Sequence record: OQ992561.1
DNA: 64,000 nucleotides
Reading direction: 5' to 3' (one strand)
Shown here: piece after piece, positions 4,344 to 41,927 of the stretch
Numbering within the stretch: position 1 is the stretch's first letter
Layout: every line of letters begins with the position of its first letter
Position numbers and translations under genes: made by a program
Notes under the pieces: generated by a model
The model's database searches: none
What the model was told of the DNA's origin: nothing
Seen by the model: only the letters and a program-made list of their open reading frames with translations

Positions 4344-4868
4344 ATGTTTAAGAAACTTATTCAATATTTCCGGGGCTTCCAAAAGGAAGTTGGTAAAGAA
4401 CAACTTCTAACTGAATTAGAACGGATAGATAAAGATATTATTTCAGGTGAAGAACGATTAAAAGCTATTAATAATTTCTGGCAATTAATTAATCTGGATG
4501 AATTAAAAACTCTGACCATCAGGAAGATGATAGGTGTTCCTGTCTATCTAAGACATTACAGTATTGGTTATTTATTAGATGCTCTAACTAGGTTAAATGA
4601 TCATATTGCAAATGAAGATGATCTAAAGATTAGTGAAATGTGTCGTACTGAGTTTATCGACAGGAAATCAATTGACCTTGATGAATATTTTATAAACAGT
4701 AATGATAGTTTTATTGATGTATGTAAATCTATTGAAACTATGCGTGACTTAATTTGGCAACAAACTGAATATCTTGAACAGATTAACCATCAAGCATATC
4801 AGCGCCAGATGGATAGAATGTACTATGATATTATTGAACTATCAAGAGCAATTATTAAGTTACTATGA
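4344..4868 (+). CDS. Hypothetical helical protein (start revised to ATG 4344)
   Basis: In-frame ATG with AGG upstream avoids overlap with the divergent gene. Confidence 0.7.
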   Translation: MFKKLIQYFRGFQKEVGKEQLLTELERIDKDIISGEERLKAINNFWQLINLDELKTLTIRKMIGVPVYLRHYSIGYLLDALTRLNDHIANEDDLKISEMCRTEFIDRKSIDLDEYFINSNDSFIDVCKSIETMRDLIWQQTEYLEQINHQAYQRQMDRMYYDIIELSRAIIKLL

Positions 4869-11730: not shown

Positions 11731-14700
11731 TAGTGTTTCCTCTATATACAGCTACAAGATGTTTTCCAGCTGCCCACAAGATACCAGTTGTTGTAGCAAT
11801 GATTTTAGGAGATAGAACCATTCGTTCTTCTACCGATGTATTACCGAATAGTAGATCAATATTACGGCCATCTTCAGTTTCATTACGTCCAGTCATTACA
11901 CGGGAGAATACCGTTTTCATCTGGTTAGCTACTACGCCTTTATCTCCAACACCACATGGGATATCATGATCGATATACACTCGAATAATCATGTGGTCAT
12001 ATTCTAAGGCTCGTCCTTTCACTCGATAGTTAGCATCTACTTGTCCAGTGAAAGTAGGTTCTTTCAATGATTTAGCTCGTTCAGCGCGTTGTTTATCTGA
12101 CGTATTAGCTAATGCTTGTAAACTTGGTGTCATATCGTCTATTTCACCATGATAGAAGCATTCAATCTTTGATACTGTACCTACGAGCTTAGCACGTGGC
12201 GAATATGCTGATAGTTTGCGTAATGTCTCAATAGATGCCTCGTCATATAGTGAGTGAGCAGCTGTTTCAGGATCTTCAATTATACATAGAATTGAATTTA
12301 AGTCGACGTGATCCCCAACTTTCACCATATCTCGAATAGTCTGATCAAACCTAACATCGATATTCTTGATTGCAGTTGTTTGAGTATTTAACCTTTTAGC
12401 TAGGTCTTCAGAAATAACTGAACCGTCTTCTAAAGTGTCAAGGTTATCATCAAATGCTACAACAGCCATACAACCGGCTTTCCATAATACTTGCCCAGGC
12501 GTATACCTATCTTCAGAGAAATAACGTTTGTTATATGTGATAGTATCTCCACGTTTAAACTTATCACCTTTCTTTAATGAGGTAACAAGAATGTGTGGAT
12601 AGTTAACACCAGCTGCTGTGCCATGAACTGTACCTAATTGATATCCAAATACATTACCATCGGCATATTTAACTTGGATACCATATTCATCAATAGCTAC
12701 AACCTCACCATCTTGTTCTGCTGCTACAGCAAAGATAGAACTAGTCCTTTGGGCTATGATTTGTTCATAGCCTGTACGAACTGGTGTAACTGTATACCCA
12801 TCAGCATAAATACCTTGCTGCTGCTGAATTGAGATAAAGTTAATTCGCTTAGGGTCATCATGTTCGGTTGCAACACCAAGCAGTGCACTAGTTGAGAGTA
12901 GTCTAGCTGGCCCATCTGTCTTTGGATCAAACATACGCGTAACACCACGCATGTTTACAAAGTTAGCATCAGGTACTAAGTAAGCAATAACACCAACGTC
13001 ACCTGAGTCCACAGTTGATTCACTGACCACACCAACATCCGCTTCACCGTAAATACGTGTACGTGCAACCATTGAAGTTGGACCGCGTCCACCATCTCCA
13101 CGATAAGTCATCGCTTCTTGTTCACGGATATTTGCAATGGGGTTAGAATCTTCAATAGTGGCTACTGTCGGATCTTGTACAATCTTGCACCAGATCACGT
13201 GTGGATCTAACTCGACAGTTTGCACTGACCCACCATTACGCATATTAAATACACGTACCGCTCTATTGAGTTCATTAAAAATAGCCCCTGCCATGCGCTC
13301 ATAACCACGATAGCGCATATATGCACCATCTACTTCTGCTGGACTCCAGTCGTTCGTTAATAACTCGACAGACCGATAAAGCAATCCTTCAAAAGTAGTT
13401 GGTTCACCCATCTCCTTGAGTAGACCCTCAGTGATTGGATCGACCCATGCTGAGAAGAGTGTATCAATATCACGTGTAAATCTATTACTTAATCCAGCTT
13501 CTTCAAGAACCCTGAAGTAAACATCTCGTTTATTGAAATCATAAACAGAATAACGCCGCAGTGATTTATGATAACGTTTGAGTCCACTTAATACAAGCAT
13601 TGCTTTATAATCAGCTCGATCAAATACTAGGATCTCATCAGCGAACGCTAATGTATAATCCGTACTATTGACAACAATCCTGGTACCACGCTGATGACGC
13701 TGATAATTAACATTCAACTTCTTAAGTAGATTGTTTAAGCCATGGTGATATGCTAAAATGAAACCTAATGGTAGCTCTTTACCACCAATTGACATTAGAA
13801 TAGCTTCTAACGGCGCTTTGGTTAGATCTAAGCCAAGTATATCTGTAATGGTACCAATAGGTTCTAGCTCATTACCTGTTTTCATGTAAAAGATGGAATT
13901 CTTATCTAACAAGATAGCATCAGTGCCATTGAACCCAACCATTATCAAATCATCAGTTTCATAATCTTCGATATGTAATCCTTGTTTTGCAAAGAATTCA
14001 TTACGATCTTTGAAATTAAAATAGAACACATTACGGTGATTATGGAAGCCTTTAAAAGCTGTTCCTAAAGTAGTGTACACCCTTGGTAGAACATAGTTGG
14101 ATTGATCTAATTCAGCATAGGTAACTGAATGTACAGACATATCACTTCCATCTAATGCACGGTTGGTAATCGCTCTGATTAACCAATTATCAAAGTTGTT
14201 TTCAGCACGTTCAGATCTGGTCACAAAGGTCTTATTATAATAAGAGGTCAATGCAACTTTACGTGGATTAACTTTACGAATTGGAATATCAGCACGTTGT
14301 AAACGTTGGCGATATGTTACCCCATTAGACATGAACCTACCGTCATTATCAATGACAGGGATACGGAACATTACTTGTGAACTTCTACCACGAATAGGCT
14401 TTAATGTAACTTTGTGGATTTGGTAATGGTTACCAGAATCGCGTACAGTTTCAATTTTGTAATTAGTTACTGATACGCCTTGTTTCTGAACAGATAACAC
14501 ACTGTTTAAAATATCTTTCTTTAATAAGACCTTGTTGTATTTGCGTTGGATGGCTTTTAACTTACTACCCAACATTGATTTATCAACAATGGTTGGCTTA
14601 TCTTCAAAAGTGGTGTCTTCTGGAATCTTAAGATCATCTGGATGATATTCCATCGCCTCAGCGATCGTCATAGGTTCTACTGATTCATCATTAGGATCGG

Positions 14701-39069: not shown

Positions 39070-41181
39070 TTAAAACCGCATATATGCGGGCTGATATGGT
39101 TTATACATACGTGTATCAAAGTCATTAAAATCAATTGCGATATCATACTTCTCAAATGATTCTTTTAGCATCTGATAAATGATTTTATTTTCATCAAAAT
39201 TATTATTTTTATCAACATAACTTTCTAATGACTCTGTGATCTCAAATGGAGATTTAATACCCATAATAGCTTCAACCATTGCCTGACTCCATTTTAGAAT
39301 GTCATCTGACCTTGTTGAGATATTCGGTTCATCTTCTGTATCGAGAGTACATTGATATACGACTGTTTGTGAATCCTGACCTTTACGGTAAATTCGAGCA
39401 ATAGCTTGTTCTAGAATGTAATGCCTAAACGGTGAATTAATTGTCACCATAGTATCAGCCATCGTCATACGGACCGCTGTTGAAAGGGAAGCATATGTAG
39501 CTACCAATGGATTTAATTTAGGGTCTTTCTCAAATCTACTGATTATTTGAGGTAAATTGTCATTGGTTTTACCATACACCACCGCCGGATGCATACCTAA
39601 TTTATTGGTGTACTTATCAACAGTATCAACAACCTCAACAAACGATGTAAATGCAATCGTTTTCTTCATAGTTGATTCAGTGATACCAACCCAGTCAATA
39701 TACGGTACCATGTCCACATGGCACTGAATGCGTTTAGCACCTAAAACCCTTCCCAAACATTCACCTTGTATCTTTAGCATAACGTATTTTATAACTGATT
39801 TAATATCTCTAAAAGCAGCTATTTCATTACGAGGTAAAGTTGGCTCTATAAACATTTTTTCATATTGGTTAGATTCTTTAATTTCTTCACCAATGTATCG
39901 CGGGTCTTGATTCTTCTGAATTATTTTAATCAAATTCTTATAGCGAGCGAAACCATCTTTCTGCGCCTGGGTCTTAAGAGAGTTCTCGTGTATCGCCATT
40001 AGTTTAGCCCAATACTTCTCATCTTCTGGTCGGCGCGCAGCATAGAACTTTACACGTTCTCTAATAAAAGCTTCACAATCACGTTTAATGGCATTAAGAG
40101 TATACTGTGATCCATTTGGTATCTTGATACGATACGCTTTTATCCTCGGTGGTAAAACCTCAGTATCTTTCTTTTCAATGACGTACGCAATTAACCCAAA
40201 GCGATGTTGGACAATATCTAATCCTTTCTGTGTCTCTTTTCCAAATGCTTTCTTAAAACGTTCTTCAACCTCATTGGTGAAGAGATCGTCTAATACTCTT
40301 AATGCACTTACTAATTCAGAACCAAGTGCTTTAACAGGGGTACCTGACGCTAATAATCTGTTATTAGAGTTAGACATAAAACATATTTGCTGGAACTTAA
40401 GAGATTGTGCAGAATTAGGATCGTTCATATTGTGTGATTCATCCAGAATCACCGTAATGTTCTTACCTTTGAATATACCGCTTCTTAATAGATCAATTAT
40501 TTTATCTTGCGCCTGGTAATGGGATATAAGTATTCTTTGACCGTTGTAGGCTTTATCATCAATGGTCGACCATACTTTTTGTCTTTCCTTATACATCTCA
40601 ATAATAGATGGCTTCCATATTAGATCAATAGACTTCTTTTCACAAACAACTATAATGATATCCGACTCAACCATTTCAGCAATAGCCATCGTCATGAATG
40701 TCTTACCAGTACCAGGTTTACCTGCAACAATATCACCACGTAAACCATACTGGTCAATTCGATAATTATAATTTTCAAAATAAGCTTTTTGAGACTCATC
40801 TGGTGTAAATGTCAATTTGTCTAACATCTTGAAATTGAGTCTACCTGGTACAGAGTTGGTATCTACAGGACGAGTATTTTTTAACCAGGTATATTGAAGC
40901 ATTGCTTCACGGATGGCATTAACAGTTTTAATAGAGATGTATCTACTTCTATAATTCTTTACTGCTTCTAGCATGTAATATATTTCAGGAGCAAAGAATT
41001 TATAAAATGAAATACTACGACGACTAACCGTGTTAAATAACTGCGTAGCTAATTTAGTGGTTCGCCAATACTTGTTAATATCTCTAATGAATGCAGCACC
41101 ATCAAAACCACTGATGATAATTTCTTGATCAGTTTCAGTAATTGATAGCGAGCCCATTAGCTTCCTAAATGAGTCTATCAT
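39070..41181 (-). CDS. SF2 (SNF2/DEAD-like) helicase (phiKZ gp203-like)
   Basis: GKPGTGKT, DESH, SGT, QAIARIYRKGQ. Confidence 0.9.
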   Translation of the reverse strand: MIDSFRKLMGSLSITETDQEIIISGFDGAAFIRDINKYWRTTKLATQLFNTVSRRSISFYKFFAPEIYYMLEAVKNYRSRYISIKTVNAIREAMLQYTWLKNTRPVDTNSVPGRLNFKMLDKLTFTPDESQKAYFENYNYRIDQYGLRGDIVAGKPGTGKTFMTMAIAEMVESDIIIVVCEKKSIDLIWKPSIIEMYKERQKVWSTIDDKAYNGQRILISHYQAQDKIIDLLRSGIFKGKNITVILDESHNMNDPNSAQSLKFQQICFMSNSNNRLLASGTPVKALGSELVSALRVLDDLFTNEVEERFKKAFGKETQKGLDIVQHRFGLIAYVIEKKDTEVLPPRIKAYRIKIPNGSQYTLNAIKRDCEAFIRERVKFYAARRPEDEKYWAKLMAIHENSLKTQAQKDGFARYKNLIKIIQKNQDPRYIGEEIKESNQYEKMFIEPTLPRNEIAAFRDIKSVIKYVMLKIQGECLGRVLGAKRIQCHVDMVPYIDWVGITESTMKKTIAFTSFVEVVDTVDKYTNKLGMHPAVVYGKTNDNLPQIISRFEKDPKLNPLVATYASLSTAVRMTMADTMVTINSPFRHYILEQAIARIYRKGQDSQTVVYQCTLDTEDEPNISTRSDDILKWSQAMVEAIMGIKSPFEITESLESYVDKNNNFDENKIIYQMLKESFEKYDIAIDFNDFDTRMYKPYQPAYMRF

Positions 41182-41267
41182 TGCATTTTTCCTTAAGGGG
41201 TATGTAAATATAACTCTAAGTCATAAGATTAGCTAACGAATAAAAATACGCACAGTGCAATGATATA

Positions 41268-41449
41268 GAGCAAGGCAGTTTGCGTAAAACGCACTGCACT
41301 TTAAGGGGGTGATCCAGTCGTAAATAAACCGGGGTACTAAAGTATCGTCAGGAACGACACGAACCCCAACTACGGTGCCTTGCTACTCACCGACCTCTAG
41401 ATAGGGGTCGGACCTATTACATTAAAGGAGCCCACCAGGGGCTCCTTTA
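41268..41449 (+). ncRNA. Candidate structured small RNA
   Basis: GC-rich intergenic island without ORF; closing helix agcaaggca/tgccttgct, several internal hairpins, 9-bp hairpin with G-U, own terminator. Confidence 0.6.
41423..41449 (+). terminator. Intrinsic terminator
   Basis: taaaggagccc-acca-g-gggctccttta. Confidence 0.8.
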
Positions 41450-41461
41450 TGCCATTCATTA

Positions 41462-41485
41462 TAAATTAATTTAAATCTATATTAC
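41462..41485 (+). promoter_or_regulatory. phiKZ-type early promoter
   Basis: TAAATTAATTTAAATCTATATTAC, core 41478-41485. Confidence 0.7.
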
Positions 41486-41531
41486 AGGATTACCATAAAG
41501 ATATTTATCCTTTTATAATGAGGAAAAGATT

Positions 41532-41927
41532 ATGTCCGATATTAATAGCACCAGTGTAACAGATGAACTAGTACCTTATTTTCCATCGGCGGATGCCATT
41601 ATTAGTTCTACTATTAGGGATGAAGTAATTCCTAATATTTTGTTATTCCACAAGAATGCTTTTAGTGACTTCCAACACGTTAGTAATATCACAGGTACTA
41701 ATCAGATTGCATCAGGTTATTTACCAGGCGTAGGTTATTATCTTGAGTATAGTGTCACCGGTAATGCTAACCTCATTCCACCTGAAGCAATTAAAGTATT
41801 ACGTAATGTAATCACTAAAAATGGATATAAAGATGACATTACCATCACACCAAAAGGTTTTGGCCTAATCAATTGGTTCATTGTAAGAGTATACGTAGAT
41901 GAGCAAATTAAGAAGACTACTCAATAA
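41532..41927 (+). CDS. Hypothetical early protein
   Basis: GAGGA SD. Confidence 0.75.
   Translation: MSDINSTSVTDELVPYFPSADAIISSTIRDEVIPNILLFHKNAFSDFQHVSNITGTNQIASGYLPGVGYYLEYSVTGNANLIPPEAIKVLRNVITKNGYKDDITITPKGFGLINWFIVRVYVDEQIKKTTQ

Follow-up and report, generated by a model that had tools for sequence, protein, structure and literature searches.

Evidence for a conserved structured RNA gene of phiKZ-like jumbo phages with an antisense match to the 3' tail of 16S rRNA

The 350-nt intergenic gap between the phage genes gp203 and gp204 (positions 41182-41531 of the 64,000-nucleotide stretch of sequence record OQ992561.1, hereafter the window) very probably holds a real, conserved gene for a structured non-coding RNA (ncRNA), located on the + strand and predicted to be transcribed from 41268 to 41449 (~180 nt). 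The most conserved segment of this RNA is the reverse complement of the 3' end of 16S ribosomal RNA (rRNA), the anti-Shine-Dalgarno (anti-SD) sequence included, up to the foot of helix 45, and on the strength of the sequence comparisons we lean slightly towards the reading that the RNA acts through pairing with this tail. Across the region the window shows an identity of 100% with Pseudomonas phage ANB1 and of 99.8% with phiKZ, and its copy of the element is called the phiKZ copy below; phiKZ coordinates are obtained by adding 171,586 to those of the window, which places the element at phiKZ 212,854-213,035 (+). A first-pass annotation, made from the letters of this one sequence, had pointed to a GC-rich island without an open reading frame (ORF) in the gap, and had proposed an independently transcribed, ~180-nt RNA of the + strand with several helices and a multi-way junction. 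The island was readily verified, since the gap contains no ORF of at least 30 amino acids, and the G+C fraction, 0.30 and 0.21 in the flanks and 0.36 in the whole window, rises to 0.51 in 41268-41449. Each of the helices that the annotation listed was also found at its given position in the window. Overall, the observation was confirmed and its interpretation partly supported; the annotation made no mention of the anti-16S block, which is the decisive feature of the RNA.

Complementarity to the 3' end of 16S rRNA

The anti-16S block (41302-41322) forms part of the strand joining helices P2 and P3, where the consensus structure presented below leaves it unpaired; its invariant core, AGGRGGUGAUCCAG, occupies 41304-41317. 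When Watson-Crick and G-U pairs were counted together, contiguous pairing with the 16S tail extended over 14-21 nt in all 16 copies of the element, starting in each of them 0 or 1 nt from the last 16S base. The run is 21 nt long in phiKZ (41302-41322), 19 in PS119XW, 14 in Phabio, and 19-20 in group B, one of the two related groups formed by the copies. The corresponding duplex energies ranged from -30 to -38 kcal/mol, as compared with means of about -15 to -19 kcal/mol for shuffled sequences. This was the only long match to the tail in the 64-kb window, in which the next runs (13-14 nt) were rich in G-U pairs and fell elsewhere in the tail, and in which runs of Watson-Crick pairs alone reached 9-10 nt outside the block, the size of a very good Shine-Dalgarno (SD) sequence. 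Local alignment of eight homologues with the whole 16S rRNA in both orientations left the antisense match to the tail as the only consistent one; a resemblance in the sense orientation of AGUCGUAA and ACAAGGUAG to 16S nucleotides 1493-1509 was rejected on this ground. The complementarity to host rRNA is thus extended, conserved among homologues, and exceptional in the window.

On the host side, a 32-mer ending in ...CUGCGGCUGGAUCACCUCCUUA was found in many Pseudomonas genomes; the matches listed included P. putida, P. fluorescens, P. viridiflava and P. avellanae, and P. aeruginosa was not among them. In P. putida PSE7, the 32-mer is exactly the last 32 nt of the Rfam small-subunit rRNA match. 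The universal 16S reverse primer AAGGAGGTGATCCAGCC, which appears in papers that name P. aeruginosa, at least five of them devoted to this species, matches the same 16S end, and the PS119XW block differs from this primer by one A-to-G change. When the RNA was folded jointly with the tail, the net gain was -6 to -13 kcal/mol for a tail of 13 nt and -16 to -26 kcal/mol for one of 20 nt, and fell to between 0 and -5 kcal/mol when the block was scrambled; the same calculation on ordinary SD sequences gave -8.7 kcal/mol for GGAG and -13.6 kcal/mol for UAAGGAGGU.

Fold, covariation and homologues of the RNA

The predicted fold is a three-way junction, followed by a P5 domain and a terminator. It is closed by P1, a helix of 9 bp between 41269-41277 and 41376-41384. 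The second arm, P2 (41275-41297), is a bipartite hairpin, composed of an outer stem, GCAG/CUGC (41275-41278 with 41294-41297), and an inner stem, UGCGU/ACGCA (41281-41285 with 41289-41293), with the loop AAA. The third arm is long, and consists of P3, GGGGU/ACCCC (41331-41335 with 41363-41367), which encloses P4, UCGU/ACGA (41345-41348 with 41354-41357; loop CAGGA). The strand J3/1 (41368-41375), carrying the conserved AACUACGG, leads back to P1, and the P5 hairpin, CCGACCUCU-AGAU-AGGGGUCGG, with one U-G pair, occupies 41390-41411. The folding energy of the + strand was -71.4 kcal/mol (z = -4.89), and none of 200 shuffled sequences was as stable; since the minus strand folded about equally well (-72.8 kcal/mol, z = -4.62), the strand could not be settled by single-sequence folding, and was assigned from the comparative evidence described in the next section.

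In the model-guided alignment of the homologues, designated A5, 89.8% of the pair cells held standard pairs, as against 31-43% when the 3' partners were slid by 1-3 columns. Compensatory changes on both sides were seen in 16 of the 21 pairs, and not one of 500 shuffles reached any of the five measures that were scored. Because A5 leans towards the model, RNAalifold was also run on a plain MAFFT alignment, from which it recovered P1, the inner P2 stem and P3, all with compensatory changes. For the individual helices, such changes were found in 4 of the 6 modelled pairs of P1 (90% of cells paired), in 5 of 5 pairs of P3, which closes the arm that ends in P4, and in 4 of 4 modelled pairs of P4 (95% of cells paired). 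The P4 loop is of the GNRA class in 14 of the 16 copies (GGGA, GAGA, GCGA, GUGA), the exceptions being phiKZ with CAGGA and Phabio with GGGAA. Folding of the P2 sub-segment, sequence by sequence, gave an outer stem, a bulge and an inner stem in all 16, and the outer stem covaries (GCAG/CUGC, GGUC/GACC, GGUA/UAUC, AGUU/AGCU, GGU/ACC); the P3/P4 sub-segments, folded one by one in the same way, likewise yielded concordant arms in all 16. Fourteen of the 16 homologues have ACUACG in J3/1, Phabio and the metagenomic copy L035 being different, and ten copies have a hairpin of varying sequence at the position of P5. A conserved structure with compensatory changes of this kind is as expected of an independent structured ncRNA, and the family ranks among the best-supported structured RNAs of the chimalliviruses, even if the mechanism proposed below is wrong.

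P1, P3, P4 and the P5 hairpin had all been read from the single sequence by the first-pass annotation and withstood the comparison, with compensatory changes in P1 and in all pairs of P3 and P4. Its version of P2 stood in part: the inner hairpin is present, whereas the GCAG/CUGC stem, offered as an extension, can form only at the expense of the innermost 3 bp of P1. In every lineage, in fact, the P2 outer stem and the innermost 1-3 pairs of P1 draw on the same purines (in the window, 41275-41278 against 41275-41277/41376-41378), an exclusivity that may represent a conformational switch or mere breathing of the junction. Two smaller pairings were lost. A sub-hairpin of the form tact-aa-agta has a 2-nt loop and is impossible in the copies of PS119XW, PhiPA3 and 201phi2-1, and a competing or pseudoknot pairing of GUCGU with ACGAC is not conserved, as it draws its 3' partner from the variable strand of P4. 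A helix between GUCGU, 3' of the block, and ACGR in J3/1 can be drawn in several copies and not in 201phi2-1, Phabio or L035; it lacks compensatory changes.

Certain local pairings touch the block itself. An anti-SD-like GACCUCU lies within P5 (41392-41398), and the same heptamer in the 3' domain is common to phiKZ and the six group-B copies other than the metagenomic copy L164; it is located downstream of P1 in L142, L176, L181, L167, L189 and L232, these group-B copies having no comparable P5 hairpin. The heptamer could pair with the anti-16S block and mask it, forming a pseudoknot across P1. The P5 hairpin of phiKZ, L035 and L164 takes the form of an SD/anti-SD-like duplex, in which CCUCU or CUCC faces an SD-like strand. 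RNAalifold also drew a mini-hairpin of 3 bp within the block (41305-41315; GGR/UCC, loop GGUGA), which varies only from G-U to A-U and so permits no covariation test.

The RNA belongs to no Rfam family, nor is it a tRNA, transfer-messenger RNA (tmRNA), 6S RNA or packaging RNA (pRNA). Rfam 15, applied to the whole window at gathering thresholds, returned no match to families that include 6S, phage pRNA, signal recognition particle (SRP) RNA, riboswitches, small ribozymes and C/D guides, and a search of 41100-41600 with E values up to 10 returned nothing relevant. The only matches overlapping the RNA at E<=10 were SraG and RefA9, on the minus strand and confined to the terminator, with 16-18 bits against gathering scores of 49-50; three other matches fell outside 41268-41449. 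ARAGORN found no tRNA or tmRNA gene in the window. 6S RNA imitates an open promoter by means of the large bubble at the centre of its one long, irregular hairpin. It was rejected as a candidate, since the supported fold is a three-way junction with 3' hairpins rather than one long bubbled hairpin, and Rfam gave no 6S match. The first-pass statement that the RNA resembles no tRNA, tmRNA or small ribozyme is in agreement with these searches, while the roles it had floated (pRNA-like, protein sponge, tRNA mimic, regulator of RNA polymerase) have no specific support of any kind. Of the checks it had suggested, the Rfam search thus assigned no family, and the collection of chimallivirus homologues produced 16 with conserved, covarying pairing.

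The homologues were sorted with a covariance model, R1, built in this analysis, by which the 16 distinct true members scored 54-130 bits. They belong to the genera Phikzvirus, Pawinskivirus, Miltoncavirus, Serwervirus, Phabiovirus and Tepukevirus, complemented by metagenomic jumbo-phage contigs. The core was recovered by blastn in PS119XW, PA1C and HPP-Temi (Pawinskivirus), PhiPA3, 201phi2-1, Viktualia and Phabio; each of these copies sits near the helicase gene, in a space of 260-320 nt between genes, and the Psa21 copy was located by inspection beside its helicase gene. Pattern scans of IMG/VR and metagenomes, filtered with R1, added L035, L164, L167, L176, L181, L205, L232 and L189, six of these eight lying on contigs of 211-317 kb; the matches of a first, loose DNA pattern were mostly chance occurrences in coding sequence, and a scan with the helicase protein as single query returned the same phage only. 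The homologous transcripts would span 159-186 nt. With three divergent queries, blastn matched the element in Pseudomonas phages only.

A few sites resembling the element were also noted. A weak R1 match in phage OBP (L147 29251-29377, minus strand; 13 bits, E = 0.32) that contains AGGGGGUUAUCCAGUCGGUAA was taken as chance because it spans the boundary of the abutting coding sequences (CDSs) OBP_254 and OBP_255. Two IMG/VR contigs of 84 and 51 kb, L127 (~12241-12331, minus) and L133 (~4462-4551, minus), have no R1 match and carry AAGGUGGUGAUCCAG, which, a single U-U mismatch aside, matches the 16S tail; a tRNA-like sequence immediately precedes it in L127, and in both contigs a GC-rich hairpin region follows. 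These sites may be an analogous element or a strong SD. Short CDSs for a 'hypothetical protein' have been annotated over the RNA in Viktualia (L143 1498-1587) and HPP-Temi (L144 1440-1535 and 1633-1722); their frames are not conserved in the other homologues, and they are probably artefacts of gene calling.

Transcription unit and genomic setting

We infer that the element is a separate gene of the + strand, to be transcribed by a phage RNA polymerase from a middle-type promoter at or near an ATAG and ended by an intrinsic terminator. The tetramer ATAG at 41265-41268 is invariant in all 16 copies, and the predicted start, within 41265-41271, coincides with the foot of P1 and with the start that the first-pass annotation gave for the RNA. 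Upstream of it, at 41242-41250, the motif AAAAATACG fits the phiKZ middle-promoter consensus, 5'-AAanTTACc-3', which is centred at about -24 (Yakunina et al., PMC4666361), and for middle-type starts a TACT that follows an A-rich run and lies 22 nt before the start has also been described (Wicke et al.). In 15 of the 16 copies, ATAG is preceded, at a distance of 15 or 17 nt, by a TAC that closes an A-rich stretch, L176 having GAC instead, and this spacing fits both rules. The sequence TGATATAG is present at 41261-41268. A 9-mer of the same region, ATGATATAG, was rejected as a general promoter motif, as its matches with one mismatch numbered 28 in the window against 40 expected; the conserved parts of the start region are the TAC motif and ATAG, and not the whole of ATGATATAG.

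The terminator hairpin, AAAGGAGCCC-ACCAG-GGGCUCCUUU (41424-41448), had been recognized as a separate terminator in the first-pass annotation, and a GC-rich hairpin followed by U(U)UAUG is conserved in all 16 homologues. The U-rich tail follows the hairpin on the + strand, and on the minus strand PS119XW has none. A scan for sigma-70 and intrinsic-terminator consensus sequences reported no terminator by its strict U-run rule, a scan that is unsuited to the phage's own polymerases. Abutting the terminator stem is a TATG (41448-41451, +), again invariant in 16 of 16 and equal to the phiKZ late promoter, TATG with G as +1 (Yakunina et al., PMC4666361); it may serve as a late promoter for gp204 or form part of an extended terminator stem. 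An early-promoter core, TATATTAC, is located between the terminator and gp204 (41478-41485, +), and the exact core, CTATATTAC, occurs in 8 of the 16 copies, with one mismatch in two more. The TATG and the early-promoter core after the terminator indicate that the downstream gene probably has promoters of its own.

As to the strand, the helices contain 31 GU/UG pairs and 11 AC/CA combinations, an excess that assigns the RNA to the + strand and agrees with the first-pass argument from the U-G pair of P5. The promoter motif, ATAG and terminator are likewise conserved on the + strand only. In PS119XW, the two flanking genes are both on the other strand, the next gene converging on the element, so that the element is probably a transcription unit of its own; together with the promoter motifs of the next gene, this arrangement argues against a cis-acting leader.

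The neighbourhood of the element is less constant than the element. In the window, gp203 (39070-41181, minus) encodes an SNF2/DEAD helicase (Pfam SNF2-rel, ResIII, Helicase_C) and faces the gap with its start, and gp204 (41532-41927, +) belongs to a PHROG of unknown function. No Pfam domain was found in gp204, gp205 or the next ORF, whose PHROG families are all of unknown function, and these neighbours therefore offer no clue to the role of the RNA. Genes of the phage itself are preceded by SD sequences, namely AAGGA in the case of gp203 and GAGGA in that of gp204. In phiKZ and Psa21 the element is divergent from the helicase gene, in PhiPA3 it lies upstream of this gene and co-oriented with it, and in Phabio and 201phi2-1 the helicase is 0.3-1.5 kb away with other small genes in between. 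Since the arrangement of genes varies between genera, the element travels as a separate module.

Two observations concern the helicase gene itself. In the copies with a divergent helicase gene, namely phiKZ, Psa21, L164, L181, L167 and L189, a sequence at 41218-41233, AAGTCATAAGATTAGC, is conserved, and its minus-strand reading, ...CTTATGAC..., contains the late-promoter motif TATG (the complement of 41222-41225); this is probably the promoter of the virion-associated helicase gene. Furthermore, in several phages the gp203-type helicase matches in two pieces over ~2.9-3.2 kb instead of 2.1 kb, as in SL2 (MF805716 74235-77165), PhiPA3 (216447-219608), PA1C, for which two helicase CDSs are annotated, and PS119XW (208783-211929). 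An insertion of ~1 kb seems to interrupt the gene in these four, and an intron, intein or homing element is possible.

Proposed action, alternatives and related systems

In jumbo phages that form a nucleus, transcription is kept apart from translation, and the ribosomes of the host still have to be won. The mRNAs of phiKZ are preferentially ribosome-associated, and a ribosome-binding phage protein has been described; to our knowledge, no phage RNA that addresses the ribosome directly has been described in host takeover. The RNA presented here would probably do so, docking on the very tail by which the ribosome recruits mRNA. It would be transcribed from mid-infection onwards and leave the phage nucleus for the cytoplasm as mRNAs do, whereupon it would pair with the free 3' tail of the 30S subunit as a 'super Shine-Dalgarno' devoid of a start codon, occupying or capping the anti-SD, while the folded scaffold may rest on the platform of that subunit or carry a phage partner. 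In this role the RNA would be a non-translatable decoy or adaptor. By such binding the RNA could compete with SD-led initiation, shield the 16S 3' end or tether the 30S subunit, outcomes that we do not rank. RNase R, a 3'-to-5' exonuclease, starts the decay of 30S subunits at the 16S 3' end (PMC10901742). More tentatively, and with less confidence than in the pairing as such, the RNA may be the first natural 'anti-anti-Shine-Dalgarno' RNA acting in trans, i.e., a phage guide or adaptor that reprograms the 30S subunit by means of its P2, P3/P4 and P5 scaffold. Such reprogramming might bias initiation away from SD-dependent host mRNAs, cap the 16S 3' end against exonucleases such as RNase R, or bring a phage protein or the surface of the phage nucleus to the ribosome, and the exclusivity of inner P1 and outer P2 could then be a switch coupled to binding.

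Several points weigh against action through the 16S tail and have to be set beside the length and constancy of the match. The net affinity for the 13-nt free tail is only that of a good ordinary SD, and in mature subunits any pairing beyond ~13 nt must open the base of 16S helix 45. Single-sequence thermodynamics gave the block a mean unpaired probability of 0.29-0.56, i.e., it is partly masked, and its invariance means that covariation cannot tell whether it is paired or free. Phage genes use SD sequences as well, and a global anti-SD blocker would thus hit phage translation too. On the comparative side, the pair counts come from an alignment (A5) that was fitted to the model, and the 16 sequences represent two related groups. 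Lastly, a search with R1 and for anti-tail runs of at least 11 nt, confined to the surroundings of the helicase gene rather than whole genomes, found no homologue within 20 kb of the helicase in EL, OBP, RTH11 (Xanthomonas) or RP12 (Ralstonia), nor within 7 kb of it in Goslar or Moabite.

Other explanations were weighed against the same evidence. It is conceivable, though we judge it unlikely, that the structured RNA is real and has its function elsewhere, as a protein sponge or scaffold or as a regulator of mRNA, and that the 16S match is a by-product, for example of a purine-rich protein site. The covarying scaffold, the GNRA-capped P4, the conserved AACUACG and the P5 loops do point to selection beyond the block, and the partial masking of the block fits such a role; a chance origin is nevertheless very unlikely for a 14-nt invariant core with an extension to 19-21 nt that ends at the 16S terminus in 16 of 16 copies, the more so as the block is the most conserved segment of the RNA and its match to the tail is by a wide margin the longest in 64 kb. 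Less probable still is a cis-acting 5' leader or attenuator, in which transcripts from the middle promoter would either stop at the terminator or read into gp204. Precedent exists in the 17 short RNAs derived from 5' untranslated regions (UTRs) by premature termination in phiKZ (Putzeys et al.), and in most genomes the element does lie upstream of the next gene and in the same direction. Co-orientation fails in PS119XW, however; the TATG, along with the early-promoter core in 8 of 16 copies (10 with one mismatch allowed), intervenes between terminator and gene; and a leader would leave the anti-16S block unexplained.

We give very little credence to the notion that the block is an unusually strong but ordinary SD, serving a tiny ORF or a start-stop ribosome trap within the RNA. 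Several copies have frames of 4-10 codons that begin at a GUG overlapping the block's end, and the automatic CDSs in Viktualia and HPP-Temi might also be cited in favour of such an SD. This GUG, however, is spaced 0-1 nt from the SD core, no AUG, GUG or UUG occurs 5-13 nt downstream of that core in any of the copies read, the frames differ in length and phase among copies, with indels that are not multiples of three, and genuine SD matches elsewhere in the window do not exceed 9-10 nt. The lack of a start at usable spacing and the variable GUG frames argue that the block is not the ribosome-binding site of a conserved ORF. Hardly more credible is a functional minus strand, whose transcript would mimic the 16S 3' tail (CUGGAUCACCCCCUUA) and soak up SDs or factors that recognize the tail: its folding is about as stable and the phiKZ terminator hairpin is nearly symmetric, but the G-U bias of the helices, the location of promoter motif and ATAG, and the tail-less minus-strand terminator of PS119XW all speak for the + strand. 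Finally, a DNA-level element that makes no RNA, such as an origin, a packaging site or a protein-binding site, would suit an intergenic GC-rich island with inverted repeats and divergent genes on either side, and yet we regard it as scarcely tenable, considering that the compensatory changes proceed through G-U intermediates and are strand-specific, that the loop class GNRA is conserved, and that the element has a putative promoter and terminator of its own.

Searches of the literature on phiKZ ncRNA, 30S, anti-SD and 16S found no description of this RNA, the supplementary tables of the transcriptome papers being outside the scope of the search; the main texts of the phiKZ and 201phi2-1 transcriptome papers (PMC10914365, PMC8244752, PMC11512511) do not name the locus, and the reviews of phage small RNAs (sRNAs) and jumbo phages that were consulted list no rRNA-directed phage RNA. 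If action through the 16S tail is correct, control of translation initiation by an rRNA-directed RNA would constitute a new layer of host takeover. The prediction is a sharp one, with a defined block of 14 nt, a defined partner, and the possibility of compensatory mutations. The family would also aid the annotation of phiKZ-like therapeutic phages, in which it is now overlaid by spurious small ORFs, and may offer a natural scaffold for the presentation of antisense sequences to ribosomes.

Among known systems, the RNA would work most like an SD site detached from any gene. It would share with SD/anti-SD pairing of mRNA the partner, the 16S 3' tail, and the polarity, and differs in having 14-21 contiguous pairs instead of 4-9, in being encoded in trans by a gene of its own without start codon or ORF, and in a complementarity that reaches the last 16S nucleotide and the strand of helix 45. 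Structured mRNA operators, such as the rpsO/S15 pseudoknot, trap the 30S subunit on its platform, and the phage RNA likewise has a fold flanking an SD-like element. With bacterial and phage sRNAs and sponges it shares a short antisense 'seed', predicted to be exposed in the fold, and a putative intrinsic terminator, although its predicted target is rRNA and not an mRNA or sRNA, and its seed is far longer and invariant. The ncRNA candidates reported for phiKZ and 201phi2-1, namely 3'UTR_PHIKZ298, 5'UTR_p40 and the sRNA upstream of gp182/gp277, are, as is predicted of this RNA, short structured chimallivirus transcripts made by phage RNA polymerase and conserved between genera; they come from other loci, and none has been described as complementary to rRNA.

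The P6 element of OLE RNA is an SD/anti-SD mimic bound by ribosomal protein bS21 (PMC12054373), and OLE is thus another structured ncRNA with SD/anti-SD-derived sequences, a likeness that recalls the P5 duplexes of phiKZ, L035 and L164. In OLE, however, the anti-SD itself is present, internally paired and protein-bound, whereas the main element of the phage RNA is an antisense of the tail that the consensus structure leaves unpaired; the two differ in size, fold and host range, and the phage RNA has no Rfam match. An archaeal fragment of Val-tRNA binds the 30S subunit and blocks initiation (PMC11009984); it is a small trans-acting RNA directed at the small subunit, and the phage RNA is predicted to share this mode and an effect on initiation. 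That fragment binds the decoding site, does not pair with the rRNA tail, and is processed from a cellular tRNA, unlike the product of a dedicated phage gene. Synthetic oligonucleotides and peptide nucleic acids (PNAs) complementary to the 16S 3' end inhibit initiation; they are artificial ligands of the same target for which the phage RNA would be a natural, structured and conserved gene product.

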